IMG/VR virus record: IMGVR_UViG_3300025009_000050
Location: 124,001-188,000 of that record
Length of the DNA: 64,000 nucleotides
Reading direction: 5' to 3' (one strand)
Shown here: positions 45,904-62,470 of the stretch, one piece after another
Layout of the letters: each line of letters starts with the position of its first letter
Numbering within the stretch: the stretch's first letter is position 1
The notes under the pieces: model-generated
Seen by the model: the letters and a program-made list of their open reading frames with translations, nothing else
Told to the model about the DNA's origin: nothing
Database searches by the model: none
Program-made: the position numbers and the translations under genes

Positions 45904-46710
45904 CTACTTGATAATAACATTTCCTGGAGTTATCTTTTCATCCCACATTGAATAGTAAGTTGCAAGATATGTTTTCTTATTATTTATCTTAAATTCTAAA
46001 ACTTCTCCATTTATGATTTTGTCACTCACACTAAGTGCCTTACTCATAATTACATTGATAGATAATGCTTCTCCCATGGATATATTATCTATATAATACT
46101 TGATTGCTGAACGTGCAGAATAAGATAGACTACTTGCCTCCACGGAGCTTACACTTGGATGCATAACTAATTTCACACTAACATCAACAGTCGTGATATT
46201 CGGTTTCATAGCAACTGCTTTTATACCGTATGCTTTCTCTCTGTCTAACACTGCTTGTACTGAGTTTATAATAGTATCAGAGGTATTAGGATCGTCTACC
46301 ATTACATATACAGAAAAACTTCCTATCCCATATGTGTAAGGAACTAATACTACGTCTTTGACATCTGCTACTGATAGACTTTTTAGTCTAATAGTAGTCT
46401 CGTTAGCTCCTGCTGAAGAATACACTTGTTGACTAATCAAGTATCTATAATTGTCATCTGTATCTCCACTCTTGCGTGGACAGTTTAACATAGCCCCCAT
46501 CAAGTCTAAAAACTTACCAGATGCCGTGCTTATGTATGCCATAGATATGTATCTGTCAAGAGTGGTATAACATTCTTCTAGCTCTTCATTTATTATGTCA
46601 AGAAAGGTTCTTGCTATTGTTCCAGGAGAAAAGTCTGTTATATCAGTATTGTTAGCTAAAGCATCCATCATTCTTTGCATTCTTACTTTCTTATTAGAGT
46701 ACACTATCAT
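45904..46710 (-). CDS. Baseplate J-like wedge protein, short form (268 aa)
   Basis: ITDFSPGTIART...ISTASGKFLDLMG...R...DTDDNYR...GSFSVYV. ATGA overlap with the upstream gene. Confidence 0.8.
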   Translation of the reverse strand: MIVYSNKKVRMQRMMDALANNTDITDFSPGTIARTFLDIINEELEECYTTLDRYISMAYISTASGKFLDLMGAMLNCPRKSGDTDDNYRYLISQQVYSSAGANETTIRLKSLSVADVKDVVLVPYTYGIGSFSVYVMVDDPNTSDTIINSVQAVLDREKAYGIKAVAMKPNITTVDVSVKLVMHPSVSSVEASSLSYSARSAIKYYIDNISMGEALSINVIMSKALSVSDKIINGEVLEFKINNKKTYLATYYSMWDEKITPGNVIIK

Positions 46711-47285
46711 ACTACACCAAACTCCTTAATCCCATCTTCATATCCAAACGAAGCATATAACGTAATAGTATATGGATTAGATATGCGTATGAAATATATT
46801 ATGTTATTAGAATCAACTGGTACAGACCTTATATTCGCATCTTTAGGATTAATAAAACCATCATATGTTAGTGACTTTAATATATTGTATGAACCAATGT
46901 CAGCATTAGCCCTTGTATTCTGTTCGCCAATCAAATCTTCAAGATTAGCTCCGATAGTAGGATGGTGATACCAATCTGGATTTTGTGTCTTTATCCTGTT
47001 GTACACGACTTGTTTAAACCAGCTTATGTCTGATATTAATGCTATATCCTTCATTTCCTTCAACACTTGATTACCATTATCGTCAATACCACAATCTACA
47101 TAAATCTTATTCCCCTCATCATCAACTCGGCAAGGCGTAGTAATGATATCTCCTTCAACTGAGACAAATGTGCCGATACATCCATTTATCAAACAAGCTT
47201 GCCCTTCTTTGGCGTCAATAGGAACGTAATGAGTATCATCTTCAGAGCAGATAACTTTCCCAGCGCGTATATCAAAGTCTCTCAT
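46707..47285 (-). CDS. gp25-like / DUF2634-like baseplate wedge (sheath-initiator) protein (192 aa)
   Basis: KQVVYNRIKTQNPDWYHHPTIGANLEDLIG...ILKSLTYDG. Position next to the J-like gene; TAATG overlap. Confidence 0.75.
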   Translation of the reverse strand: MRDFDIRAGKVICSEDDTHYVPIDAKEGQACLINGCIGTFVSVEGDIITTPCRVDDEGNKIYVDCGIDDNGNQVLKEMKDIALISDISWFKQVVYNRIKTQNPDWYHHPTIGANLEDLIGEQNTRANADIGSYNILKSLTYDGFINPKDANIRSVPVDSNNIIYFIRISNPYTITLYASFGYEDGIKEFGVV

Positions 47286-47829: not shown

Positions 47830-48201
47830 TTATCCTCCAATACGTCCTAGATATTTAGGTACTTGTGGTCCATGGTGCACCTTAAGATCTTCTTTTTCTT
47901 TCTTCTCTGTGAATATTGTTGTGATGATTGGTGTTGTAGGGCTATTAAAAGTTACCCATACTTCAGTGCCAACGTTAAGAGCTACTAATTTAGTTCCACG
48001 TCCATGATCCTCAACTGGAACATCATAAAACATTACCGGAACACCAGAGTTTGGTTCCATCATATTTATTGCAGCCAGTTTCTTTATATAATCATAATGA
48101 AGTACTACACCTGGTCCTCCATTATTATTATGTTTCATAGAAGGATCTACCAATTTGTCATATATAGCTCTTCCAAGCGGATTCATGTGTTGCTTAAGCA
48201 T
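47830..48201 (-). CDS. Putative spike (gpV/gp5) OB-fold-like protein (123 aa)
   Basis: GVVLHYD...DVPV...LNVGTEVWVTF...PIIT pattern typical of gpV N-terminal OB folds, in the expected position. Confidence 0.55.
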   Translation of the reverse strand: MLKQHMNPLGRAIYDKLVDPSMKHNNNGGPGVVLHYDYIKKLAAINMMEPNSGVPVMFYDVPVEDHGRGTKLVALNVGTEVWVTFNSPTTPIITTIFTEKKEKEDLKVHHGPQVPKYLGRIGG

Positions 48202-48213
48202 ATTAGATCCCTC

Positions 48214-48885
48214 CTAATAATTCCACGTTCTGCCCGGTCCAAAATCAATGTGAACGAATCCAGAGCCAACCTCTATCCCACCAAATCCATATGCTCTAGC
48301 AGCATTAGCTAAGTCTTCAGCTACCTTTCCACTATATGAAGCATCCACAGCTCCACCAGCTAGATGCATACTCCATGGAGCTGCATTCTTTATCGAGTCA
48401 TTATACGCTCTTGACCTAAAGCCAGAGCTTATCTTAAAAGTATTCCATCCGAGGTACGCAACAAAACTAGTTAGATATTGTGCGTATGCAGGGTGGAAAT
48501 TGTTCCACCCTGCAAAAACATTATCGCTACTCTTAAATATACTAGTGTCTAGGCTGACGTAACCAGAGAAGTTTGAGGACATACACTTCTTAATAAATGC
48601 CACTTGACTTCCTGTAACTATCTGTACCTTCCCTATACCACGTGGATTAGTAAAGCCAGATATAGTACTAGCAGCAGCCGCTTCAGAAGTAGGAAGATTA
48701 GAGTTATCACTATCTTCAGAGCTTCCACTATTCTCTTGAACATTTCCATTTACGTTTTGGATATACTTCCAGTAGTTTAATAAAGACAATGAGTACTTAG
48801 AGTCAGCAAGTTCTTGATTACGATTAAGGGTTTCTTGAGGAGTTGAGTCCCCAGTTAAATAAGCTAATATGTCTAAATAGGACAT
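48214..48885 (-). CDS. Peptidase M15A-family Zn peptidoglycan peptidase (223 aa)
   Basis: ISSGFRS...SMHLAGGAVD (SxHxxGxAxD) and GFVHIDFG in the C-terminal ~110 aa. Confidence 0.9.
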   Translation of the reverse strand: MSYLDILAYLTGDSTPQETLNRNQELADSKYSLSLLNYWKYIQNVNGNVQENSGSSEDSDNSNLPTSEAAAASTISGFTNPRGIGKVQIVTGSQVAFIKKCMSSNFSGYVSLDTSIFKSSDNVFAGWNNFHPAYAQYLTSFVAYLGWNTFKISSGFRSRAYNDSIKNAAPWSMHLAGGAVDASYSGKVAEDLANAARAYGFGGIEVGSGFVHIDFGPGRTWNY

Positions 48886-48896
48886 GCAATCTCCTC

Positions 48897-51800
48897 CTAC
48901 ATATGATCTTCAGTATTGTGAGAAAACTTGTAGTCATCTCCGGTTAGTTCATTAAACAACCGTGGTATTCCAGAACCAGCACCCTTACCTTTGCCTTCCC
49001 AGAATAAATCCATTTTGCTTGGCTTATCTCCAATTACACACCCTTGATGGCCATTAAGTCCTGCAACAAGATTCTTGCCATGCGATCTGAGTGGTACAAC
49101 AATAATGGCTTGTCTATTCCTCTTCTGTCTTTTATAGGCTTCGAATATGCTATCAGCAAGAATCGTCAATCCAACTTCAGCTATTGTAGCGATGCCAAAT
49201 GGTGACAATGCCAGCCTAGCCACCATTGCTATGGATCTTCCAGAAAAAGCTAAAGCCCTACCCGTCTTTGCTGTTTGTAAGAATGTTTTCATCTTATCAT
49301 AGCCTTCAACTACATTTCCATACTTGCCGCTATAAGCAGCACTTCTTAATGATCTATTTATTTTAACATTCTTAAAGTACTCATATACTTTAGACCAATT
49401 CTTCTCCATCTTATATATATCTGCTCCCTCAGCCATAATATCATTAAGAACCCAATTATTCCCTGTAGCTTTCACAAGCATTTCAAGTCCTAACTCACCG
49501 AAGCTACTAGTTGTTCTTCTAGCAAATGCACCAAGTGAACTACCAGTTAGTTTCCTCCAAGCTCCTATTGCTGCCCAGTGTCCAGCAATATTAGCTGTAC
49601 TACCAGCTACGATTGTAGATGCCCAGTTAACATAATTTAAGAACATCTTATCATCTACTATTACGATAGCATCTGGACATATATTAGTAACAAATCCTGT
49701 ATCGTGACTTAGATGGTGAACGACTTGCTTCACGCCACACATGCCATGCATTTCATTTACTTCATCAGCAATATAACACATATCATGCGGCTTTATGGAT
49801 GGGTCTCCAATTACAGTAAGCTCTCCCTTATACATGTCCTTAACGAAGTCACGTAGTGTTTGTGCTGCAGCTGTATTGGCAAATCTCTTAGCATTTGTAT
49901 CCCCAAAATTGAAATAAGAATGTTCAAGGAAGTCTACATTAATTACGGCTGTTTTCTGCTTTTCTGGGTATATATCCTCGTCTGCATGTACGACCATAGA
50001 TGATTTAGGCACTCCACTCTTTGTCTTATACGAGGCTATAACGTTAGTGTAGACTCCTTCTTCTGAAGCTTTAATATTATTAGCTATAATATCACACCAA
50101 CTAAAGTATGTATGTATTTGGCAGAGTGGTTTACTAATCATCTCAGTAGCTGTTCGATCATATTTCTTATTGACCGGGTCCCATTTGTAGTTCCAAGCAT
50201 ATCTATCACATATTGGCCAGTGTGGTCTACCATAGAATAGCGTACTTCTAAACTCCATCGGTACCACGGTGGCTATATAGTCAGGGAATGCTACCGCTAA
50301 TGTTTGTGCTACGTCCCATACAGTTTTACCGAATAAAGGTACTACTATATTATCCTCATCACCTTTAGGGAATGGTACTCCCCAATGAAGATACCATCCC
50401 TGGTATAAATCATTCTTTGCATCTTCAGTTAAACTATCCTGTGCTACCAACGAATAAGGGTCCCAGATCCATTGACTATGGACACCAGTACCAGTTGAAG
50501 TATATATATTAGCAGCTATCTCACCTAGTTTTTCATCCCTTTTCCATGGCAATAGCGAATCTAATTTACCTTCTGGAAATGGAAAATCACGGGGATTACC
50601 AAAGTGAGTTATGCCAAGTGGGTTTTCTGGCCTATCAAATAAATTCCATAACCATTGCTTATCAGGTTCTTTCTGGTTTATCACCTGTTCTATCCAATTC
50701 CATACCGGATTGTTGTGTCTTGCCATAAGATAACATAGAGTACTTCTAGCCTCACTGTTCATATGAGAGCCGTCATTCAGTTTGTCTGGTTCTCCACCAA
50801 TCTGGTTGCATAACTCAAGACCGTCACCTTGAGCTACTATTTCAATAATATCTCCACCAGAATCAAGTTCTGTTATAGAGCCATTAAACATTATAGGTAG
50901 AGCTTGAGCATTAGATCCATATCCCATTCTTAAATGTATCCTAGCTCCTGTTTGTAGGTATAACGCAGACACATATTCCTTCCTGGCGTCAATCAATGAT
51001 TGATGATTGAATTGACCAAAGAATAGCTCATTCCATTCATACTTCTGATCGTACTTAGGATATTCAAGATTCATATCATATCTAGTCAAGTTATCATATA
51101 CATTAGTCATCCTAATGACACAAGTATCAGCGGCTATCTTCCTAGACTTGATTATGTCTATAGATTGAATAGAGTTAAATCCGTAGAAGTTATCCCACAG
51201 TTTAATCCAACTAACCCAACGACCTTCATCTATGAGTAGCATTTGGAATGATGGGAACGCTCTGAGTAGTCTTCCTCTGTGATCAGTTTCTAGCATGTCA
51301 GTAAATGAATCTCTAACTATCTTATTGTTATCAATCTGCGGTTCATGTGGACTAAAATTAATTTTAGTTGGTGAATTAGCTGCAGACATCTTTCCTTCTG
51401 TTTGATCTTCAACTTCAGATGGATAATCTGCATGGACTCCAGTTGTAGGAGGAGTATATTTCGTACCAAGCATTTCAGATCTAGTAGAACTAGAACCAGC
51501 CGATTTAAACTTCTCATACCATTTCTTAACCTTTGTGTAATAATCCCATGAACTTGGAGCGGTCAAATCATCTACATTTCCTTTGTTGTAAGCAACTACA
51601 GCCCAACCATATATATCTTCAGAATACTTAGGATTCTTTAATTTAGTTACTGCTATTATCTTTTCTATATAATATTTAGTACATACGTGAATATTATATT
51701 TCCAATCCCATGCTATTCTTCTAGCAGTTTCCAAGGTTAAACCATGTTGATCTAGCATATATTGTCCAAGTCCTACAGCAGATGAACCCTCTTCGTTCCA

Positions 51801-54800
51801 ATATGGCTTTTTATTTATAAATTGTAACCAAGATCTACTTTCTTGTGTTATGATAGCTTTCATCCATAATACAGCTGGCTCTTTAAGCATATCAGTACCT
51901 GTTAGCAAATGATCTACTTCTGATTCAATTGCTCTAGCAACAGCTTCCTCGTCTGGATTAACACCAATATGACTAGCAAAGTACTCTCCTTCTTCCTCGT
52001 GTCCTTTAAACCATCTATTTATTTCATTTTCAGTTGGTGAATAATTTATCATTGATTTATTACTTACATTCGGTTCGCTAACAGCCCTGTATTGCATAAT
52101 ATCAACATTAATCGCACTTTCACTTGAATCCCCATTTATCTTAACTGGAGGCTTTTCATCGGCATCAATATTAGATATATCATTCTTATATTGCTCTTGC
52201 TTTGCCTTCCCATATTTCTTATTAAGCTCTAGGTCTTCTTTAATCTTAGCCTCTGAGTACTTCTTTAGTTCATCACTCACTTTATATAATGGTTGATATG
52301 TTTCATTCTCATTAAGAGTAAGACTTGTAGGTACTCTGAGAGATGCTGTTCCTATCCTACATTTTATATCCATACCAGCTTTCTTCTCATCCTTCTCCTG
52401 TTCTTCCTTGTTTATCATATCACGCAAGTCTTTTCTGAGTGTATGCGGAGTATATATGAAGAAATCAGGATCAACAAACTTACCTGCTGACCAACCAGCC
52501 TCCTGAGGAAAGATATAGTTTATATTCGCTTTAGTAGTAAAGGTCTTAAGCTCGTCCCATGTAGGAAGTTCTAAGTCTGGATATACTTCAATATTTTTAA
52601 GTCTTTCTTCAACTATAACTTCTTCCATGCCGTAGAAAGATTTTACATTATTGAGATTGACTCCTTCTCCAGTGTTTAATGACTTCAGTCTTTCAGACCT
52701 ACGCTGAGTTTTATCAAAGCCAATCAGAGTAAGCACTATTTCATATCTATCTGGGAAACCACGTACGGTATTCACTGTTACATTTTCTACTAGTGTATAT
52801 CGAACTCCGAATAAATTTACTATTGGGTTATTAATCCCAAGATATCCACACACCATACCGAACTTGTAATCCCTAGTATATCTCTCAGCATCCCTGATCA
52901 TTTTAACAAGGTTCTTAACTGGCTCCTTACCTACCGAAGTCATGCTTATTTGTATGTAGGCATCCTGAGAGCCTAAATATTGATGAGTAGAGGCTTCACA
53001 TTGTTGTATCTGCATTGAACTAATTATATTTTCTAGACCAACATGGATGGATTCCACAACGAGACCCTTTATTCGTAACTCATCCATTAAAATGTTTTCT
53101 TCTGCGTTCTCAATCCTTTGTTGTCGTTGTTTCAAGTCATCTAATTTCTCAGCAAAATCATCTTGCTGAGTTTCATATCTATCTGCAATTGTATCTAATA
53201 GATGTTTGTCTTCTACATCAATCACATACCAACCATTTGATGGTTCGCCATAACCGTTAGCCTTCAGTAACTCAATATTTTGGTATGCGGTAATATTTAC
53301 ACGATACCTGCGTTTAGTATAATACATGGGATCACGTTTTACATATACTCCTGGAGCTTGGAATCTAATATCTTCCATCTTAGAATCTTGTATTCCAGTC
53401 AATTCATCTACTGAGACATCTTTGATTACTCCACTTGGCCAAGTCTCAGCTATCTTCTCGTATGCTTCTTGTTGCATAAATGCTTCTTCGCATCCTTCTC
53501 CATCACTATTAATCTTACTCCAAAGAGTATTAGAATCTGGGTATGTCATATCAAGCTTGCTCTTAGACTTTAGTAGCTCAGCTACCTCTTGTTTAATCTG
53601 CATCAAGTTAGATTCATTAGCTAATCTAAAAACTAAATCAGTACTACTGCCGTCTAATGGCTTAAGGTATATTCTATCTGCAGATCGCTCATTCATTGGC
53701 CCTTGGCAATACCACCTGAATAGTGGCCAACAGAAGGAGTCATAGAAGTCGTCCGTATAAGGCATATATGCTTGATGGTCAAACTTTAACATAGTTATAT
53801 TAACAACTATACAATCAGGGAATCCTGGTACAGTTTGAGCAGTCATATTGACTAATGTTACAGATTCTACCCCATGTACTTCTTCAAGGTAATCATTTTG
53901 GATAGGAACGAATGGGCTCTTCTTGAATTGAGATACTAGAGGTCTTAAGCCATTTACGTAGAATGTTGAACCATCGTTACCCTTAACTGGATAACCATTA
54001 ATATAGTCTTTATTATGGAAGAACAGTTCAACTTGTACTGCTATATCAGAGAACCCTGTCTTAGTTTGGATACTGCTCTTACTGCGTAATACAGGTACTT
54101 TATTGATCTTAGACTGTCTTGTTACTGTTATAGCCTGTGGAGGTATAGCTAATTCTACATCTCCTATTAGCATATAGCCAGGAGGTCTATTATCGCGCGG
54201 CATACGCTCATTCTCCATAGGTTCAACGAGATTTAGATTAGAGTTATAACCGACTTGTGGTCTATAATTTATGCTTGTTACGGTGGGATCTACTACTTCA
54301 GGTTTCCTCTTTTTATGAGTAGTCCATGATGATACGGAGACATGCCCGCTATTCATATTCATTACATCGCCAAGATTACTCTCGATCAAGCTTCTATTCA
54401 CATTCACAGAATTATACTCATCTGTGTATACTACGGCAAGTCTACGATTATAAATGTCTGTAGCAAATACTATTTCACCATCAGTCTTACTTAATACAGA
54501 TAAATCTAAGACTACAATACTACCCTCTTCTAGTATGCTTTTTGTAAACTCTTTAGCTTTTTCACCAATAGCACGTGCCTCATCTAAACTAAGGCCCTCA
54601 GTTATTGAGTAAGCGCTGGAATGAGTCTCTTGATACTGGTTACCAGATGTTTCAGGACAATTCACTCCTATGAAGCGCACATTAAAAGATGTATCTTCTG
54701 GTTCTAAGCCACATGCTTCGATAGTATCTCCGTCAATAACCCTAATTACCGAAGCTCTCATTATGTGATTCTGTAGCGTATCTATTGTAGGTTTATCCTC

Positions 54801-54815
54801 ATAATAAAGAGCCAT
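48897..54815 (-). CDS. Baseplate hub-like protein fused to an N-terminal thermonuclease (SNase) domain and a central SLT lytic transglycosylase
   Basis: SNase motifs VIDGDT, VRFIGVNCPE, DIYNRRLAVVY. SLT motifs AIITQES, AVGLGQ, AVVAYNKG. Hub-like ADTCVIRMTN...RIHLRMGYGS...FNGSITE. Start placed at ATG 54815 (TAATG overlap, GGGAGG upstream) rather than the track's TTG at 54830. Confidence 0.82.
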   Translation of the reverse strand: MALYYEDKPTIDTLQNHIMRASVIRVIDGDTIEACGLEPEDTSFNVRFIGVNCPETSGNQYQETHSSAYSITEGLSLDEARAIGEKAKEFTKSILEEGSIVVLDLSVLSKTDGEIVFATDIYNRRLAVVYTDEYNSVNVNRSLIESNLGDVMNMNSGHVSVSSWTTHKKRKPEVVDPTVTSINYRPQVGYNSNLNLVEPMENERMPRDNRPPGYMLIGDVELAIPPQAITVTRQSKINKVPVLRSKSSIQTKTGFSDIAVQVELFFHNKDYINGYPVKGNDGSTFYVNGLRPLVSQFKKSPFVPIQNDYLEEVHGVESVTLVNMTAQTVPGFPDCIVVNITMLKFDHQAYMPYTDDFYDSFCWPLFRWYCQGPMNERSADRIYLKPLDGSSTDLVFRLANESNLMQIKQEVAELLKSKSKLDMTYPDSNTLWSKINSDGEGCEEAFMQQEAYEKIAETWPSGVIKDVSVDELTGIQDSKMEDIRFQAPGVYVKRDPMYYTKRRYRVNITAYQNIELLKANGYGEPSNGWYVIDVEDKHLLDTIADRYETQQDDFAEKLDDLKQRQQRIENAEENILMDELRIKGLVVESIHVGLENIISSMQIQQCEASTHQYLGSQDAYIQISMTSVGKEPVKNLVKMIRDAERYTRDYKFGMVCGYLGINNPIVNLFGVRYTLVENVTVNTVRGFPDRYEIVLTLIGFDKTQRRSERLKSLNTGEGVNLNNVKSFYGMEEVIVEERLKNIEVYPDLELPTWDELKTFTTKANINYIFPQEAGWSAGKFVDPDFFIYTPHTLRKDLRDMINKEEQEKDEKKAGMDIKCRIGTASLRVPTSLTLNENETYQPLYKVSDELKKYSEAKIKEDLELNKKYGKAKQEQYKNDISNIDADEKPPVKINGDSSESAINVDIMQYRAVSEPNVSNKSMINYSPTENEINRWFKGHEEEGEYFASHIGVNPDEEAVARAIESEVDHLLTGTDMLKEPAVLWMKAIITQESRSWLQFINKKPYWNEEGSSAVGLGQYMLDQHGLTLETARRIAWDWKYNIHVCTKYYIEKIIAVTKLKNPKYSEDIYGWAVVAYNKGNVDDLTAPSSWDYYTKVKKWYEKFKSAGSSSTRSEMLGTKYTPPTTGVHADYPSEVEDQTEGKMSAANSPTKINFSPHEPQIDNNKIVRDSFTDMLETDHRGRLLRAFPSFQMLLIDEGRWVSWIKLWDNFYGFNSIQSIDIIKSRKIAADTCVIRMTNVYDNLTRYDMNLEYPKYDQKYEWNELFFGQFNHQSLIDARKEYVSALYLQTGARIHLRMGYGSNAQALPIMFNGSITELDSGGDIIEIVAQGDGLELCNQIGGEPDKLNDGSHMNSEARSTLCYLMARHNNPVWNWIEQVINQKEPDKQWLWNLFDRPENPLGITHFGNPRDFPFPEGKLDSLLPWKRDEKLGEIAANIYTSTGTGVHSQWIWDPYSLVAQDSLTEDAKNDLYQGWYLHWGVPFPKGDEDNIVVPLFGKTVWDVAQTLAVAFPDYIATVVPMEFRSTLFYGRPHWPICDRYAWNYKWDPVNKKYDRTATEMISKPLCQIHTYFSWCDIIANNIKASEEGVYTNVIASYKTKSGVPKSSMVVHADEDIYPEKQKTAVINVDFLEHSYFNFGDTNAKRFANTAAAQTLRDFVKDMYKGELTVIGDPSIKPHDMCYIADEVNEMHGMCGVKQVVHHLSHDTGFVTNICPDAIVIVDDKMFLNYVNWASTIVAGSTANIAGHWAAIGAWRKLTGSSLGAFARRTTSSFGELGLEMLVKATGNNWVLNDIMAEGADIYKMEKNWSKVYEYFKNVKINRSLRSAAYSGKYGNVVEGYDKMKTFLQTAKTGRALAFSGRSIAMVARLALSPFGIATIAEVGLTILADSIFEAYKRQKRNRQAIIVVPLRSHGKNLVAGLNGHQGCVIGDKPSKMDLFWEGKGKGAGSGIPRLFNELTGDDYKFSHNTEDHM

Positions 54816-55099
54816 TATCTTCCCTCCCAATTAGCTAACTCTATATACATAATCGATTCATCAATATATTCAACATAAACATCGGCCCTAAATAGTTTCT
54901 TAGGAGTATTGTCTATAGGTTTGAATGGACCTAGCGTACTCATTAAGTTGTATAATTTAGGACCGATAGTATTGCTATCTGCTGGTTGTGGATTAGAATA
55001 TGTGTGAACATATTTCCCATCTACCCTTGCAGCTATATCCCACCTATCATAATCAGAATAGGATACACCTATTAACTTTCCACTAGATCTTATGATCAT
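54815..55099 (-). CDS. Small hypothetical protein (94 aa)
   Basis: GGAGG SD at 55108-55112; its TAA overlaps the ATG of the hub gene. Confidence 0.75.
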   Translation of the reverse strand: MIIRSSGKLIGVSYSDYDRWDIAARVDGKYVHTYSNPQPADSNTIGPKLYNLMSTLGPFKPIDNTPKKLFRADVYVEYIDESIMYIELANWEGR

Positions 55100-55111
55100 T
55101 CACGTATCCTC

Positions 55112-58100
55112 CTAGAATGCTTGGCCCTTGGTCAAGGCATTAGTTACAACGCTTTGCACCCACATATTATCTATCCTCTGAGTGTTATCATTAGACGTAA
55201 TATTCATATTCATATTAACTGGCATTGCAGATGATATCTGTCCTTGTACTAATTGTCCGATCTGCTCATTAGACAAGCCATTAGCATCCCTAGCTCTAAT
55301 CATAACCTGTAGGTTTTCGTAACCTTCTCCACTCTGTGTTATCCTAGCTACTGGTCCTCCAGGAGAAGCATCAGGAGTAGGTATATAACCACCGCCATCT
55401 ATGGGTGGAGCTTGGTCCGGCTGAGGCATCATGTCTTTAGGTAGAGGGTCTGCAAACATATTACCTACCATCATTAGTCCTGCAAATGCTCCAGCTCCCC
55501 ATCCTGCACCAGCTAATTTAGAGCCACCAGCGACATGTTCAACATCCCTGAATATATTTCGCATTGTTTGTTCGCCAACAGTAACCATGTCCGGCCTAGT
55601 TCTCTGGTCAGCATAGGCACTATTTAGAACCATATTAGATGAAGCCCTCTCATCTAATGCCCACTTGGTTCGTTGTTCAGCACGTTCAAATGCCTTTCTC
55701 TCTAGTTCCTCAGCCTTCTGCTCACCGTGCAATATCCTCCATACGTTTGTTACTGAGGAGGTTGGTGCTTCTCCAGAAAGGTTTCCATTTAACACATCGA
55801 CCAGGGTGTTAAGATTTTTAATCCCTGAACTTACGCCCATTCTATTTGTTGCGCTGTGTATTACCCCTTCTAGATCTCCACCCATAACAGTCTTTAGATC
55901 ATTGACAGCGCCAAACCCTTCATACACAGTAGCGATCTGACGAACTGCAAATTTAGAACTACCCTTTATTCCTCCACTATAGGCTTGTCTGCGGTACTCT
56001 TCCATGTCTGTAGCGTCTACATCCATAGCTCCTACTATCTTCGCATGTTCAATGAAGGTTTCTCTATCTCCACGAATCATTGCATTGACCATTTCGGATG
56101 AAGAACTTATTCTCTTATCAAGTAGCTTATTCCTCTCTGCTTCTTGTCCTGCAGAATCTATTCCAGCCCATTCATCAATTGTTTTTGCTAGATGATCATC
56201 AAGTGCAGATTTCGAGAAGTGTTTAGACGAGATAGAAGACTGTGTTACCAATTCACCGAGGGCTGTTACAGCTTGTGCTTTCTTCAAGTCAAACGACTGA
56301 GGATTTATTCTCATAGCAATCTCTGCCATCTTACGCATTGAAGTAGCTACGTTCGAAGAGTAACCAATATATGAGCGGCCAAGTCTTGCTTCTAATTCGG
56401 CTCTTGCGACGCTTCCTACGGTTTGTAGCTCTGCCTTTGGTAGATCTATATTTTCACCCGTATAAGCCTTCACCCAATCTCCGTATGATGCACTGCTACT
56501 CTTTCTATTGTCTGCTTCATATAGCTTAGATACTAATTCATCATAGAACTGTCTTCTAGGTTCTATCTCTCTTATATGCGCTGCTATTTCACCTATTGCA
56601 CCTGTGCCAGACCGTAGTTGAGATTCAATCTGCCATCTGGTTTTGCCTTTGAAGTGTGCAAGCAGAGTGGACATAAAATCACCATCGTTGTCTGCTGCAT
56701 AAGCTACGGCATCACCAACAGTTACTTGAATTGCATGAGGAGCTAGCCTATCTAATGCCTCGTTAACTCTGAGCCAGGTAGGTTCTATAGACCTTAAGCC
56801 TTCTGTAGGATAACGACCTACTATACCAGGCAGACCTTTAACTCCATACTTCTCCTGAAGTTCTCTAGTGTCTCCGAGTGCTAATTCTTCTAATAGCTCA
56901 GGAACACCTTTCTTCATACCCTTAGTCATTTCTCTTAATCTACCAAGGGATATTTCAGCAGTAGCTGCTGCTTTCTTTTGTCCAGGAGAGAATGTTTGAA
57001 CTAAGAATTGTCCGCTATGTTGGAGTCTAGCAGATTCTATACTGTTATAAACAAGACCTTTAGAATCGCTGACACCTCTGATGTTTACGTTGGTGAAATG
57101 ATCCATTGCCTTTTGTAGGCTTGTGCTTGCTTCTTTCCCTGTTAGGTCAAGCGTAGCTATGTCTTGGAGCGTTCTAATCACTCTACCACTTGCTGCTAAT
57201 AATTCATTAGCCTGTGGCATTTGAGCAACCCCTAGTTTCCTAGGCTGTCCTATAGGTAGAAAGACTTTATTGATTATATTATCACCAGCAGTTACATAGA
57301 ACGGTAACTCAAATACCGCTCCACCACGGGACAATATTTTCTCTGCCTTCTTTGGAGTAAGAGCTCCAGGTTCTCCAGAATGTACTTGGTTATTAGCTAT
57401 CTTCTCTATGTCGTCATACCACGTACCGGTATAGTCGATATCACTCTTGACATCTCCAGAACGTAGGAATCTTTTAAATGATGATAATGATACTCTGCCT
57501 TCTCCAGTTTCTCCTATAGGAGTCTGAGAATGTATTACTGTGTCTCTACTGTCTATCATTCCAGTTAGACTATTAATTGACCTTTCATACTTTCTTAACT
57601 GTGACTTTACTTCCTTCTTCCCAGCTTCTATGCGTCCATTTTCGCTAAGCTTGTCTGCAACTGCGCCATCTAATAGATCTACTCCAGCTTGTTCTCTAAC
57701 CATCTTCTCGTATTCTTTAGCTGTTGCAGTTAACCCATTAAGTCGAAACATGCCTATTTCCTTGGGTCCTATCTTGTATATACCACCCTCACTACCTACT
57801 GCTTTGAACCATGGTTCAATAGGTTGTGCTCCTACATTCTCATAACCAGTCATTATATTACCAACACCAGCAACATTAATTAATAACTTGTCCGTTAAGT
57901 TGCTTCCTATAATGTCACTTACTTTATCAAGCACTTGCGTCTTGAATAGCTTGTGATCTATTACTTGGTTCTTAGGATTATTGATCATCACAAGCATTTT
58001 ATTCTTGCTTCCTGGTACGTCTTCAAACTTGAACCCGCTATTGCCGAAGAAGTTATTGAGAACTTTGATTACATCATCTTCTACTTTGTTTCTTACTAGA

Positions 58101-61100
58101 TTCTTTGTAGTAATCTGATTCTGTACTTCATTAACCATAGCCCTTACTTGGCTACTTATGATGTCTCCATGTCCGCCGTGCTTGAGTGCTTGCGAGCCCA
58201 TTACAAGATGAAGCTTATCGGCCTCTGCTCCGAACAAACTGTTCCATCTATCGTTCTCAACCAGAGTCAAAGTCATCTTATCACCGCTAGAGGTTATAAG
58301 TTTAAGACCATTTGCTGCTGGTAGTGTTCTTTCTACTGAAACTTTATATTTGTTTTCTCCAAGTTTCGTTATAGCATTTACTACACCAGGCTGTTTCTTA
58401 TTATACCTTGCATCTCCCTGAAGTACGCCGAAAGTATTACCTTCGCCATCTACTATCTTAGACTCTACCAATTGACCAATGGTGAATGGCTTTTCAGAGG
58501 GAGCGATAGTATAAGGGTCGCCCTTCTCTATCGAAGCTAGTATCTCCTTATTAATGTCACTAACTACATACTCGTTAACCATCTTCATCTTGAGAAGATC
58601 ATTAGCTATATCGCCACGCATAAATGCTCTGGCGTCATACGTCGATTCTACTAATCCGGTTAAAGGAGCTCCAGTCCTCTCAGCCTCAGCAATCATCTTC
58701 TGTACTTGGTTATCATCCATGTAAGCTGTCTTAACAGTAACCCATGGTGCTAAGTTATTACCTGTGACTCCATATCTAGCTTTCCCTGCTTCAGTCATGA
58801 GTAGGGGGTTAGCTAGTTCACTATACTTCGTTCTAAGTGCTTCTGCTGATTTAGGGTGGAATGGATGGATATTCTCTGCCTGTGTCATCCTCATTGTTGC
58901 TGCAGATGAATGGTATCCAAATGGAATGAACTGACGTATGTCATTGACACTACGACTGATTCTTCCATTCTTACCAGTAAACTGAGCTTCCTTGAGTGTG
59001 TGAGGATTTAATACGTCATTTATAACATCGATAGGAGTACCAAGTTTTACACTTAATCTCTCTGCAATGGTTCTATTCAGGTTTACAGAGTCAGTTAAGT
59101 TCAAACCTGAGATGTCCTTCCCAGCTAGGAATTCTTTTATTCCTTCAAAGTAGATTACTTCACTACGCTGTCTTATACTAGCATGACTTAGGTTGCGTAT
59201 CTTCCTAGTATCCATTACTTCATCGGAGTCAAGGAAATTGGCACCAGATAAGTCTTTAAGTACTTTGTTCTGAGCCCAGTTGACAAGTGCCTGTGCTTGT
59301 GCATAGTCTCCTTTCAACATTGCTTCTTTAACTCGTTTAGATATACCAACCTGAGATTGTAGAATCTTATCGAAGCTTGTTTCAACACCAATGTTCTTAC
59401 CATCAAGTGTGAAGTCCATCTGGTTAATTCTCATAACCCTACCAACAGTAAGAATCCTTCTTTCATCCACCAATGGGATGTTAACCTTAACTACATCGCT
59501 ATTATTCATTATCTGTTCTACTGTCTGCTTACCTACTGTTGCTGCTTTCTTCTCATCATATAGAGCAAAGATAAAACCCTTATTGTCAGGTGATGACAAT
59601 ATAGTCCCATCTATATTTGCATCTGTAAGATACCTTGATAGTAGCTTCTTTATTGGTTCTTCTGCTTTCCTATTAAGCCCGAATAAAGGCCCTAGTCTTT
59701 TTAGTGGAGAAAGCTGTTCATGAATAATAGCATTATGCGCTTCTAACATCTTAGCAAACTCTTGGTTTGCCGCTAGGTTAGGAACAAAAGCTTTATCTAT
59801 CTTCTGCCATGCACTACTACCACGTCTTTGTCCTTCATCTAGCGCATGATTAGCTACCAACCGCATTTGATCAGGGGTAAGCTTTTCCCATATGCCTCCA
59901 TTATTGGCATCAACATGGGCAACCTTATATGACAAGAACTCATTAGCTAAGTTCTTAGCTTGTATGTCGTCTATCTTCATACCAGAAACAATATCATTAG
60001 CTATCCTAGTCCTATCAAAAAGCTTTGCTGCTATTTGCTTAAGTACAAAGTTACTTTCTCTCGGACCTTGCTTCTGGATCTCTGATAGTCTTAGAAAGTT
60101 AGTAACTTCAGTACGATCTAATATATGCTTACCACCTAACTTATTTATTAGCACTGGTAGTTCGATTTTGTCGATGGGTCTTTTGGTGATTTGCCTTAGC
60201 TGTGACACTATACCTTTATAACTACCAAGATTAAGAACTATATTATCTGATAGTTGTAACATTCTATTGTTAGTTGTAGTCTTAATAACTTTCTTAGCTG
60301 GACTAATCCCACCAGTAGCTTTACGTAAGTCAGGTATTTGGACCCTACCTTCCATTATGTCTTGTAGGGCAGTAAGGGCAAAGTCCTTCTGTACTCCTTT
60401 AAGACTTTGGAATGTTCCGCTACTAATGACAGCATTAATCATTCCTCTCTCAGCTCTTAGCCTATCTTGCATATAGTAGAAGTTTCTAGCTTGTTGCTCA
60501 GAATTGAATAGATCTTTAAATTGTCCCTTAGTTAAATCATCCATAGAAGCTCTATTGACTCCAGCTTTATCAATTGCATCAAGAGCTCTCATGTATCTCT
60601 CCGCTCTTACATGGCCTCCATCGGTATCAAAGATTCTATAATATGCACGTAGAGCTCTGTCCTTCATTCTCTCTGTCCTAGTTTCTTCACCACTGACACC
60701 AGTAATATGTTCAGCATTATATGGTACTAAATGAGAGAATATACTACGTATACTATCGAACCCAGTACCACTAATATTCTCAGGTCTAACAAAGGTATGG
60801 TATAATCCTTCATCTACATTACGTAGGGTTAATGCCCATCCACCATGTTCAAAACCTTCAAGAGCGCCCTTCTCTATCTGCTTAAAGCTATGAATTCTGT
60901 ACTCGGTATTCTTATATAGGTTCCCACTAGATATAGGCTTATCGGGGTTGTCTGAGTAAGCATCTATGAATTTGCCTGTATCATCAAGTTTATATATCCC
61001 ATCGTACTTATTCTTTTCATAAGGACTTAATCCGGAAATTGAGAATAGACTACTATCAGACTTTATTGTCTTGTTGTCTATAGCAAGTACTCCACCACTT

Positions 61101-62470
61101 ATAGCATTCCAGTCTAATGATATGCTAGCCCCAGCTGCTATTCTTCTAGCACTAGCTATCTTACTATTAATATTACCTCCAATGGAGTTGAGTAACATAG
61201 GTACTGCTTCAGCATCTCCACCAGCAAAGTGTTCAATTCTATTATTGAAGGCATTAGACAATACCTCTAATGTAGTTAGACCTTGTTTCCCTCTTATCCC
61301 ACCACTTAATGTCTTGTAGTGTTCCCTCATTTTCTTGTCACCAATTAGCGGTGCTATCTGTCCGATAGGGTCATGATATGCAAGGTCAATAAGTCTATTA
61401 ACATCCAACGCTCTATGAGTACTATTAATGATATGTAGGTTCTTCATTAGGGTTTCAATGCTACTACTAATAGGACTCTGTGGTCCAAGAGCAGTCCTAG
61501 TCTGATTAAAGTATTCCATCATGGCAGGGATATCGTGTTCTAAGAAGTTATACCCCATGAGGTTACCGCCATTCTTAGCTATGTTCTCTACATGATGATT
61601 TATAGCTTTAATCATGCCATCAAGATAGCTACCTGAGTTTCCATTGCCATATAAATTTTTTAAGCCATTTCTCATCTGTGAAGTGTATGCTTTCAAATTA
61701 GTAAATGTAGATCTGTCTGGTAACTCAGATGGTGACTTAAGCTTATCTTTATTGACAAGTCTTACATCTCCTATGCCTGGGATTGTCTCTGTCTTAAATA
61801 CCTCAGAATCTTGATACCTCATTAACCACCACAGTGTACGTCTATGATCATCTGTTAATCCAGCCATTCCTGTGCTCTCTACTTGTTTGATTAAATTTTT
61901 TAGTTCTACCTTCTGCTTTTCATCTACGAAGCCAGCTAATGTCATAGTATTCATTTTATCTAGCATTGGAGAGCCACTCTTGAGGCCATTGAACTGCCAA
62001 CTAGACAAACCTACCTCAGTCATAGCAAATAGATTCATGCTCTGATTCTTTGCAAGTGGACTGACACCGAGGTTTTCAATATCTAAGCTTAAGTGAGTCA
62101 TGCCTACATTTTTAACCATGTTCTCCCATGCGGTTATTGTTCTTTGCGCTCTAGTAGCTCCCCTGGTATTTATGTAATTAAACACACTAGTGCTTGGGTT
62201 ACTAAGTACCCCATTTATTTCAGCGTTTAGTGCCCTACTAACTTTAGATCTCTCTACTACGCCACCAATGTTTCTAGGTGCACCAATGAAGTCTGGGATA
62301 TTCTTAGAACGTATTATCTGTTCTTTAGTCGGTTCTGAATTAGGGTCGTAGTAATTCCTACCTGAACCACCAAAGTTCATAAGAACTTTTGGAGTACCTA
62401 TACTATTAATAATACCTTTCTGTTCCAATACACTAGGTATACTAAAGAGTTCGCTATCATTAAACTTCAT
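55112..62470 (-). CDS. Single-chain two-barrel (double-psi beta-barrel) DNA-dependent RNA polymerase with N-terminal DEDDh 3'-5' exonuclease; probable virion RNAP (2452 aa)
   Basis: RpoB-like, in order: IPFGYHSSA..MRMTQA, VKTAYMD...TYDARAFM, GLKLITSSGDK. RpoC-like, in order: RLQHSGQF, IVGRYPT, AIQVTVGDAVAYAADNDGDFM, ALGELVTQSSISSKH. Exonuclease: LDIE, GYNFLEHD, HFAGGD. Confidence 0.88.
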   Translation of the reverse strand: MKFNDSELFSIPSVLEQKGIINSIGTPKVLMNFGGSGRNYYDPNSEPTKEQIIRSKNIPDFIGAPRNIGGVVERSKVSRALNAEINGVLSNPSTSVFNYINTRGATRAQRTITAWENMVKNVGMTHLSLDIENLGVSPLAKNQSMNLFAMTEVGLSSWQFNGLKSGSPMLDKMNTMTLAGFVDEKQKVELKNLIKQVESTGMAGLTDDHRRTLWWLMRYQDSEVFKTETIPGIGDVRLVNKDKLKSPSELPDRSTFTNLKAYTSQMRNGLKNLYGNGNSGSYLDGMIKAINHHVENIAKNGGNLMGYNFLEHDIPAMMEYFNQTRTALGPQSPISSSIETLMKNLHIINSTHRALDVNRLIDLAYHDPIGQIAPLIGDKKMREHYKTLSGGIRGKQGLTTLEVLSNAFNNRIEHFAGGDAEAVPMLLNSIGGNINSKIASARRIAAGASISLDWNAISGGVLAIDNKTIKSDSSLFSISGLSPYEKNKYDGIYKLDDTGKFIDAYSDNPDKPISSGNLYKNTEYRIHSFKQIEKGALEGFEHGGWALTLRNVDEGLYHTFVRPENISGTGFDSIRSIFSHLVPYNAEHITGVSGEETRTERMKDRALRAYYRIFDTDGGHVRAERYMRALDAIDKAGVNRASMDDLTKGQFKDLFNSEQQARNFYYMQDRLRAERGMINAVISSGTFQSLKGVQKDFALTALQDIMEGRVQIPDLRKATGGISPAKKVIKTTTNNRMLQLSDNIVLNLGSYKGIVSQLRQITKRPIDKIELPVLINKLGGKHILDRTEVTNFLRLSEIQKQGPRESNFVLKQIAAKLFDRTRIANDIVSGMKIDDIQAKNLANEFLSYKVAHVDANNGGIWEKLTPDQMRLVANHALDEGQRRGSSAWQKIDKAFVPNLAANQEFAKMLEAHNAIIHEQLSPLKRLGPLFGLNRKAEEPIKKLLSRYLTDANIDGTILSSPDNKGFIFALYDEKKAATVGKQTVEQIMNNSDVVKVNIPLVDERRILTVGRVMRINQMDFTLDGKNIGVETSFDKILQSQVGISKRVKEAMLKGDYAQAQALVNWAQNKVLKDLSGANFLDSDEVMDTRKIRNLSHASIRQRSEVIYFEGIKEFLAGKDISGLNLTDSVNLNRTIAERLSVKLGTPIDVINDVLNPHTLKEAQFTGKNGRISRSVNDIRQFIPFGYHSSAATMRMTQAENIHPFHPKSAEALRTKYSELANPLLMTEAGKARYGVTGNNLAPWVTVKTAYMDDNQVQKMIAEAERTGAPLTGLVESTYDARAFMRGDIANDLLKMKMVNEYVVSDINKEILASIEKGDPYTIAPSEKPFTIGQLVESKIVDGEGNTFGVLQGDARYNKKQPGVVNAITKLGENKYKVSVERTLPAANGLKLITSSGDKMTLTLVENDRWNSLFGAEADKLHLVMGSQALKHGGHGDIISSQVRAMVNEVQNQITTKNLVRNKVEDDVIKVLNNFFGNSGFKFEDVPGSKNKMLVMINNPKNQVIDHKLFKTQVLDKVSDIIGSNLTDKLLINVAGVGNIMTGYENVGAQPIEPWFKAVGSEGGIYKIGPKEIGMFRLNGLTATAKEYEKMVREQAGVDLLDGAVADKLSENGRIEAGKKEVKSQLRKYERSINSLTGMIDSRDTVIHSQTPIGETGEGRVSLSSFKRFLRSGDVKSDIDYTGTWYDDIEKIANNQVHSGEPGALTPKKAEKILSRGGAVFELPFYVTAGDNIINKVFLPIGQPRKLGVAQMPQANELLAASGRVIRTLQDIATLDLTGKEASTSLQKAMDHFTNVNIRGVSDSKGLVYNSIESARLQHSGQFLVQTFSPGQKKAAATAEISLGRLREMTKGMKKGVPELLEELALGDTRELQEKYGVKGLPGIVGRYPTEGLRSIEPTWLRVNEALDRLAPHAIQVTVGDAVAYAADNDGDFMSTLLAHFKGKTRWQIESQLRSGTGAIGEIAAHIREIEPRRQFYDELVSKLYEADNRKSSSASYGDWVKAYTGENIDLPKAELQTVGSVARAELEARLGRSYIGYSSNVATSMRKMAEIAMRINPQSFDLKKAQAVTALGELVTQSSISSKHFSKSALDDHLAKTIDEWAGIDSAGQEAERNKLLDKRISSSSEMVNAMIRGDRETFIEHAKIVGAMDVDATDMEEYRRQAYSGGIKGSSKFAVRQIATVYEGFGAVNDLKTVMGGDLEGVIHSATNRMGVSSGIKNLNTLVDVLNGNLSGEAPTSSVTNVWRILHGEQKAEELERKAFERAEQRTKWALDERASSNMVLNSAYADQRTRPDMVTVGEQTMRNIFRDVEHVAGGSKLAGAGWGAGAFAGLMMVGNMFADPLPKDMMPQPDQAPPIDGGGYIPTPDASPGGPVARITQSGEGYENLQVMIRARDANGLSNEQIGQLVQGQISSAMPVNMNMNITSNDNTQRIDNMWVQSVVTNALTKGQAF

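Follow-up and report, generated by a model that had tools for sequence, protein, structure and literature searches.

We analysed a window of 64,000 nucleotides, positions 124,001 to 188,000 of the IMG/VR virus record IMGVR_UViG_3300025009_000050, and within it a minus-strand gene, 48897..54815, that encodes a protein of 1972 residues followed by a stop codon. From its sequence and modelled structure we predict this protein to be the central hub of the baseplate in a jumbo phage with a contractile tail, a member of the 0305phi8-36 lineage and here an uncultured 244-kb groundwater virus. The record comprises 244,052 bp, is rated complete, and is contained at full word share in groundwater metagenomes from 2014. 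The minus strand of the window is an uninterrupted series of very large structural genes, and all window features given below lie on that strand. The hub gene occupies a single open frame (48897..54830) and is probably translated from the ATG at 54815, with a GGGAGG ribosome-binding site read directly from the sequence at 54823..54828, 7 nt before the start codon. The A of this ATG is also the last base of the TAA stop of an upstream open reading frame (ORF) of 94 residues, an overlap of one base. The gene bounds given in an earlier annotation of this DNA, made from the letters alone (the original prediction), are upheld.

The hub protein is an orthologue of 0305phi8-36 gp147. It matches PHROG 20474 at E 2e-216, and tblastn recovers the Bacillus phages KLEB27-3, Edson, and WH1 (33% identity) and, at lower identity, Moorella phage MTATph1 (30%) and gp147 itself (29%, residues 212-1718). 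These relatives are found only at the protein level, as megablast of the gene against 50,697 phage records gave no match. A phmmer search of the PDB with the whole protein returned only noise, and its domains were therefore searched separately. We are nearly certain of the architecture predicted from these searches and from structural models, in which a staphylococcal nuclease (SNase) domain, a tail-tube-like module, a GH23 lytic transglycosylase, and a baseplate hub follow one another in a single chain. The original prediction had the nuclease, transglycosylase, and hub in the correct order and overlooked the tube module, a tandem fold between the first two.

The N-terminal SNase domain spans residues 16-173 (54297..54770). 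Residues 45-150 score 26.7 bits with Pfam PF00565, whose gathering score is 21, and the model reaches 31.4 bits for this domain in a six-frame search of the virus's own genome. Single-sequence matches in the PDB are marginal (E 0.015); a profile built from eight hub N-termini retrieves dozens of staphylococcal nuclease chains at E ~1e-11 over nuclease residues 9-111, and this profile evidence supports the assignment of a putative oligonucleotide/oligosaccharide-binding (OB) fold. In the HMMER alignments, the motif VIDGDT (54723-54740) places D28 and D30 at nuclease D19 and D21; VRFIGVNCPE (54651-54680) places R47 and E55 at R35 and E43, with N52 at the D40 position and C53 at T41; and DIYNRRLAVVY (54426-54458) places D120, Y122, and R124 at D83, Y85, and R87. 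D19, D21, R35, E43, D83, Y85, and R87 are all kept in the hub domain. At the metal-ligand positions D21 is retained as D30, D40 is replaced by Asn, and T41, a main-chain ligand, by Cys. The domain had been placed at ~54370-54760 on the strength of these three motifs, all of which fall within that range; the Pfam match lies above the cut-off and the residue mapping, including Asn at D40, holds. Compared with staphylococcal nuclease, the hub domain has ~25 additional residues between E43 and D83, and in our own alignment the last C-terminal helix of the nuclease is not recognisable. A Pro-rich linker follows (residues 174-205; 54201..54296), which varies among homologues and whose first modelled residues have a low predicted local distance difference test (pLDDT) score.

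Given this conserved set, we consider it probable that the hub SNase is an active nuclease. It shares PF00565 and D21, R35, E43, Y85, and R87 with Staphylococcus aureus thermonuclease (Nuc) and with small phage SNases, and differs from Nuc in its Asn at D40, its Cys at T41, and its fusion to a structural protein of 1972 residues in place of secretion. The original prediction described the enzyme as Ca2+-dependent. That description is a presumption: the position of D40 is occupied by Asn here and by N, D, or Q across the hub clade, and the Mycoplasma SNase homologue MAG_5040 prefers Mg2+ (PMC3585158). In view of this substitution and this precedent, the metal may be Ca2+ or another divalent ion.

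Downstream of the nuclease, residues 206-707 (52695..54200), which contain core blocks A and B of the family conservation map, are modelled as a tandem tail-tube-fold module (AlphaFold2 model m395e429edc88, pLDDT mostly >85). The module resembles the tail chain 9fkb_BA of Haloferax virus HFTV1 (VIA Z 15.1) and the duplicated tube proteins T5 pb6 and P74-26 (VIA Z ~11), and each half matches tube-initiator-type chains of phi812, PVC, phiCD508, and pyocin R2. In the model, a helical insertion of ~170 residues (~residues 401-573; 53097-53615) separates the two halves. Tube-fold domains are shared with T5 pb6, the P74-26 tube protein, and the tube initiators of phi812, PVC, Afp, and pyocin R2 (Z 11-15 for the tandem model), whereas in the window protein the predicted ring module lies inside the hub polypeptide and is split by the helical insertion.

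Residues 831-1109 (51489..52325) are modelled, mostly at pLDDT >85, with the GH23 lytic transglycosylase or goose-lysozyme fold. VIA gives Z scores of 10-13 to MltF, MltC, MltE, Slt70, Cj0843, phiKZ gp144, and goose-type lysozymes, and Foldseek assigns a probability of 1.0 to a GH23-type fold. The predicted catalytic residue, E992 (51840-51842), lies in TQES (51828-51848), and is followed by GLGQ (residues 1015-1018; 51756-51776) and AYN (1075-1077; 51579-51599). Sequence profiles did not establish this domain: Pfam SLT (PF01464) has no match in the hub protein even at E<=1, and a 16-sequence profile finds only a weak EtgA match (E 0.44) for the region in the PDB. The assignment was therefore settled by fold comparison. 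It bears out the original prediction of a transglycosylase at ~51540-51880 with its QES glutamate, GLGQ, and AYN, all inside that range. Among 16 aligned relatives, most retain the catalytic Glu and three (P0010-P0012) have lost it, and 55 of 100 Atlas feature matches fall in SLT clusters.

A low-complexity Ser/Thr/Pro linker (residues 1110-1181; 51273..51488; pLDDT <50 in both models) leads into a complete hub of the gp27/P2 gpD/Mu gp44/VgrG type at residues 1182-1724 (49644..51272), which corresponds to core block C. Foldseek comparison of modelled residues 1135-1972 with whole hub proteins yields E values from 2e-13 to 1e-8, and VIA gives Z 22.1 for phage Milano, 20.2 for Mu gp44, 19.3 for the pyocin R2 hub, ~17 for VgrG, and 15.8 for T4 gp27. 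The alignments span the full references (~300-320 aligned residues; targets of 316-366 residues). The original prediction had staked its hub assignment on whether the C-terminus would model as a gp27/gpD-like fold, and it models as a complete one throughout this range of scores. Beyond the hub lies a C-terminal helical region (residues 1725-1900; 49116..49643), with long helices by DSSP of the model at low pLDDT. It holds a strongly hydrophobic, membrane-span-like stretch at residues 1860-1893 (49137-49238; Kyte-Doolittle maximum 1.74 in a 19-residue window), and the region is conserved in most of the hub family. The hydrophobic segment may have a role in membrane insertion or channel formation. 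A conserved beta segment (~residues 1901-1945; 48981..49115) appears in the family consensus, and pLDDT is 81-95 at model residues 761-800.

To place the protein in its family, we compared 83 hub homologues of 1400-3260 residues, mostly on contigs of 20-270 kb. The closest database proteins, P0001 and P0002, have only 40% identity to the query; they group with it in a tree of the hub core, with P0003 as sister to this clade. Core blocks at query residues ~210-380, 560-800, and 1160-1940 are common to 73-83 of the 83 homologues. Variation is concentrated in three slots, namely the N-terminus, the stretch from tube module to hub, and the C-terminus, together with a variable insertion between the tube domains. 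The cultured relatives are phages of Bacillus and Moorella; those in metagenome-assembled genomes come mostly from bins assigned to Bacillota, and such binning is unreliable for phage contigs. In GenBank the protein of the cultured relatives is named 'putative baseplate protein', 'virion structural protein' (WH1), or 'endolysin'.

Most of the 83 members share a homologous N-terminal SNase-like domain at ~30% identity, and the full DGDT..R..[D/N]xPE motif was found by motif scan in 29 of 72 N-regions. These calls combine a non-iterated profile of eight sequences, the motif scan, and a separate MAFFT alignment; an iterated SNase hidden Markov model was discarded because it drifted over the whole N-region of 300-350 residues and its E-values became self-fulfilling. 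Many members retain the domain despite loss of D19, D21, or E43. In homologues of ~3000 residues, ~130-155 inserted residues interrupt the SNase between its E43 and D83 regions (for example, P0028 residues 117-375). Two cultured phages carry intact copies, KLEB27-3 (gp035) and MTATph1 (CDS0032). This distribution suggests that the N-terminal SNase is probably ancestral in the hub family. A wider search of 1.84 billion cluster representatives, from which the best 150 SNase matches were examined, added 23 further giant proteins (defined as >1500 residues; here 1900-2950) with an N-terminal SNase. In all 23, D19, D21, R35, E43, and R87 are invariant, with N, D, or Q at the D40 position. Of the 120 short free-standing SNases in the same match list, 18 (15%) likewise have Asn at D40.

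The virus itself encodes a free-standing SNase of 109 residues outside the window (C1:78592-78921), with the same VNCPE motif and hence Asn at D40 and Cys at T41. Its identity to the hub domain is 44% across 45 residues only. Given this short similarity and an N-terminal SNase that is widespread and probably ancestral among hubs, recent intragenomic transfer from the free-standing gene to the hub was rejected. A metallophosphoesterase-like ORF directly follows the free-standing gene.

We identify a second nuclease module in 17 hub relatives (P0033, P0036, P0039, P0040, P0043, P0044, P0046, P0055, P0059, P0060, P0063, P0064, P0066, P0069, P0070, P0073, and P0074). The additional module is either another SNase (PF00565, 68 bits), located at the C-terminus or before the hub, or Endonuclea_NS_2 (PF13930, 68-85 bits), located at the C-terminus, between the tube domains, or inside the N-region; the two folds are unrelated. 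Within one tight clade of the hub-core tree, the C-terminal module alternates between them. In every one of these 17 relatives the N-terminal SNase site is degenerate, for example with TGNG in place of DGDT or Lys at E43. A catalytic set kept strictly at ~30% identity, together with the second nuclease in 17 members whose own site has decayed, argues that selection acts on nuclease activity; in these sequences it appears to favour the activity over any one fold.

The positions occupied by these nucleases are also occupied by enzymes of the cell wall. The N-terminal slot holds M23 in P0003, SLT in 0305phi8-36, and Amidase_2 in P0055. The middle slot holds GH23 in the query and glucosaminidase in P0003, with glucosaminidase or SLT across the family, and the C-terminal slot holds M23, lysozyme-like, NlpC/P60+M23, or VanY modules. 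In the distant relative P0083, SLT, SNase, and M23 stand in a row within one slot (residues 769-1232). By these domain assignments, nuclease modules and peptidoglycan hydrolases use the same three hub slots. Peptidoglycan hydrolases have to act outside the membrane. Since the nucleases can take the place of enzymes whose substrate is peptidoglycan, the most economical interpretation is that they too would work outside the cytoplasmic membrane, and slot-sharing favours that location. Of the two roles suggested in the original prediction, degradation of biofilm DNA and delivery into the infected cell, either may still apply.

The combination of SNase and hub has been on record for some time. Hardies, Thomas & Serwer assigned gp147 to the T4 gp27/P2 gpD family in 2007, described its terminal domains as reshuffled, and remarked on an SNase domain on the BtI1 prophage homologue of gp147, for which a reason was 'not obvious' (PMC2147016). 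The statement in the original prediction that such a fusion was not recognised as characterised therefore stands as to function, which is still uncharacterised, and not as to architecture, recorded since that paper. The window protein is a divergent gp147-family hub with SNase, and as a single protein it is no surprise after the 2007 report. Our literature search yielded no paper on a phage nuclease borne by the virion or tail, none that characterises an SNase on a hub, and nothing relevant on KLEB27-3 or MTATph1. The nuclease of phage GBSV1 was not used as a parallel, since at 10% identity by its authors' figures it is no SNase relative. What is new, as far as we have found, is the pattern across the family, with nuclease modules conserved in some members and replaced in others.

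Several known hubs help to place the protein. The BtI1 prophage-like element of Bacillus thuringiensis israelensis, compared through the 2007 remark only, shares a gp147 homologue with SNase; the window protein also carries an internal GH23 domain. The protein gp147 of 0305phi8-36 has the orthologous core, the gene order, and peptidoglycan-degrading modules on the hub in common with the window protein, yet bears an N-terminal SLT and C-terminal NlpC/P60 and M23 modules and no nuclease, in contrast to the N-terminal SNase, internal transglycosylase, and enzyme-free C-terminus found here. T4 gp27-gp5, Mu gp44, and P2 gpD have the hub fold (Z 15.8-20) and a wall-cutting enzyme on the tail tip. 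In the window protein, unlike in these devices, the enzymes are fused to the hub chain instead of the spike, a tandem tube-fold ring is fused upstream, and a nuclease is present that has no counterpart in them.

We propose that the nuclease of this hub is active, is carried at the tail tip, and works at the cell envelope, outside the cytoplasm, a reading of sequence and models for which we judge the balance to be about even. The 1972-residue chain is presumably trimeric, and would combine a tube-like adaptor ring, a gp27/gpD-type hub, and a hydrophobic C-terminal tail; a trimer of two tube-fold domains would produce a six-fold-like ring. The SNase and GH23 domains would be tethered to this scaffold by flexible linkers (residues 174-205, ~708-830, and 1110-1181), with relative module positions suggested by homologues. 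Carried on the tail tip together with wall hydrolases, the nuclease would act as the phage approaches and penetrates the cell, either on the cell surface or inside the wall. Its most likely substrate there would be nucleic acid associated with the envelope or matrix, such as extracellular DNA (eDNA) or RNA. The transglycosylase and an M15 peptidase encoded by the adjoining gene would open the peptidoglycan. A need for a divalent metal, classically Ca2+, could keep the nuclease quiet in the cytoplasm during assembly and so spare replicating phage DNA.

Several observations weigh against this proposal. The residues at the positions that we take to be the nucleotide-contacting Y113 and Y115 are both Asn in our alignment, and together with Asn at D40 and Cys at T41 this means that activity and metal preference could differ from those of staphylococcal nuclease. 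Only 3-4 independent contrasts exist on the hub-core tree, so the mutual exclusivity of an intact site and an extra nuclease is a pattern and not a test. In the 0305phi8-36 annotation (EF583821), gp147 is the only large protein of its stretch without the note 'identified as virion protein by mass spectrometry', which the flanking gp145, gp146, and gp151-155 carry. Three copies per virion, possibly buried in the baseplate before contraction, would be a poor design for digesting a matrix. The PF13930 modules of relatives are typical of injected toxins (RhsA, EsaD/EssD, YeeF, and Pne1), which points to delivery into the cell.

This last observation belongs to a different explanation, in which the nuclease, like the nuclease effectors of other contractile injection systems, would enter the host cytoplasm before or with the genome. 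There it would degrade host DNA or RNA, for immediate host shut-off or nucleotide supply, or resident competitor DNA such as plasmids and other phages. The structural homology of the hub to VgrG (Z ~17) fits such a role, as does the membership of PF13930 in the toxin domains of the type VI secretion system (T6SS) protein RhsA, the type VII secretion system (T7SS) proteins EsaD/EssD, YeeF, and the phage-tail-like MAC effector Pne1. C-terminal modules that swap like cassettes within a clade recall polymorphic toxins, and the hydrophobic C-terminal segment could insert into a membrane. T6SS Rhs, PAAR, and 'evolved' VgrG proteins, EsaD/EssD, YeeF, and Pne1 all couple a non-specific nuclease to a VgrG/gp27-type apparatus, and the hub relatives share PF13930 with such injection- and secretion-system effectors. 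Those effectors, however, are toxins sent into a target cytoplasm and paired with immunity proteins, whereas the window nuclease is of SNase type, N-terminal, housed in a slot shared with wall hydrolases, and borne by an infectious phage, and no immunity gene was found beside it. The usual effector layout, a C-terminal toxin with an adjacent immunity gene, is absent here, where the nuclease is N-terminal and the downstream genes encode the M15 peptidase and baseplate proteins; no immunity-like partner was identified, and the conserved 94-residue ORF has no match. Classical SNase chemistry requires roughly millimolar Ca2+, levels that the cytoplasm lacks, and a non-specific nuclease released there would endanger the incoming phage genome. 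The hub of known systems remains in the envelope, and peptidoglycan hydrolases occupy the slots that the nuclease uses, with one on either side of it in P0083. We regard injection as unlikely.

Slot-sharing is also compatible with a domain that in practice is no nuclease, and which binds or cleaves wall teichoic or lipoteichoic acid, phosphodiester-linked polyanions of the envelope of Gram-positive cells, as a functional relative of the wall-degrading modules with which it is interchangeable in all three slots. The strict phosphate and metal site (D21, R35, E43, and R87) combined with loss of the base-contacting Y113 and Y115 in our own alignment would suit such a substrate, relatives infect Bacillota, and glycerophosphodiesterase domains occur on staphylococcal phage baseplates. 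We know of no SNase-family member that acts on teichoic acids, and such polymers presuppose a suitable host. The replacement modules (PF13930) belong to the beta-beta-alpha-metal nucleases, whose fold is specialised for nucleic acids, and the sole property common to both folds is non-specific hydrolysis of DNA and RNA; a teichoic acid substrate is in our view improbable. We assign a similarly low likelihood to the possibility that the domain is a structural relic, an OB-fold adaptor between the tube-like ring and the wedges, at the place where tube initiators bear LysM, with catalysis incidental. Retention of the domain in many members after loss of D19, D21, or E43 implies that the fold has value apart from catalysis, and the pyocin R2 tube-fold protein likewise has ~127 extra N-terminal residues (chain 6u5b_g aligns from residue 128). 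The original prediction had named an inactive domain, purely an OB-fold scaffold, as an outcome that would count against it; D21, R35, E43, and R87 are kept in the window protein, and the catalytic residues are invariant in all 23 further giants and in the query's clade despite ~30% identity, which argues against that outcome. Close relatives replace the domain outright with M23, SLT, or amidase, a change that a load-bearing adaptor would not tolerate, and the decay of the N-terminal site in 17 of 17 members with another nuclease module also speaks for catalysis.

Returning to a nuclease that acts at the envelope, our data raise a broader and more tentative possibility, which we think has less than an even chance of being correct. 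In this large jumbo myophage lineage, nucleases or phosphodiesterases could constitute an unrecognised class of virion-borne penetration enzymes, interchangeable with peptidoglycan hydrolases in three hub slots, and under selection so strong that when one module decays another of unrelated fold is gained. Their substrate, an envelope phosphodiester polymer (surface or matrix eDNA, or teichoic acid), would then be a real barrier to infection. To our knowledge, the virion-associated enzymes described so far cut polysaccharides and peptidoglycan. A tail-tip nuclease has been present in annotations since 2007 and has never been explained; the family analysis makes the question testable through conserved catalytic residues, two nuclease folds that recur in hydrolase slots, and cultured phages with an intact copy. 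If the nuclease matters for infection, cell-surface nucleic acid is a barrier that phages must cut; if it is instead injected, phages deliver nucleases much as secretion systems do. Either outcome bears on phages in eDNA-rich biofilms and on the annotation of jumbo-phage giants as 'endolysin' or 'baseplate' proteins.

The genes around the hub are consistent with its assignment to the baseplate. Upstream, at 55112..62470, a gene of 2452 residues stands in tape-measure position; it is assigned by position and size only, has no Pfam or PHROG match, and is syntenic with the 'hypothetical tape measure protein' gp146 of 0305phi8-36 (2537 residues) and with KLEB27-3 gp034. Between it and the hub lies the ORF of 94 residues (54818..55099), whose stop overlaps the hub ATG. 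Its position is kept beside the hub of the close relative P0002 (L014:8706-9011; 38% identity, E 4e-17), and family and fold searches gave no match and no support for a recognisable chaperone or inhibitor. As pure speculation, it might serve as a chaperone for assembly, or else bind the hub enzymes as their partner or inhibitor.

Downstream of the hub, a protein of 223 residues (48214..48885) has a C-terminal Peptidase_M15 domain (PF08291, E 1.7e-9, above the cut-off; PHROG 894) and is by this match a putative further cell-wall enzyme adjoining the hub. It is followed by a homologue, 123 residues long (47830..48201), of 0305phi8-36 gp148, which is annotated as a P2 gpV-like spike; the BLASTP match is full-length and collinear and is weak (E 8e-4, 21% identity). 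At the position of the M15 gene, between hub and gpV-like gene, KLEB27-3 encodes a structural protein that resembles lytic transglycosylases, and 0305phi8-36 lacks a gene altogether. A possible gp25/gpW-like sheath initiator (46707-47285; weak PF10934 match) and a Baseplate_J protein (45904-46710; PF04865, E 1.6e-10) come next, and PHROGs 975 and 6 are matched by these two genes. The order from the tape-measure position through the hub to the M15, gpV-like, gp25/gpW-like, and gpJ genes is shared with 0305phi8-36, KLEB27-3, and the P0002 contig. No useful clues to the host came from the giant tail proteins nearby. Several other structural ORFs of 1000-1500 residues are almost without annotation, and an ORF of 4122 residues in the tail or fibre region (19034-31402) has weak Pfam matches only, to a lactonase-type beta-propeller and to pentapeptide repeats.

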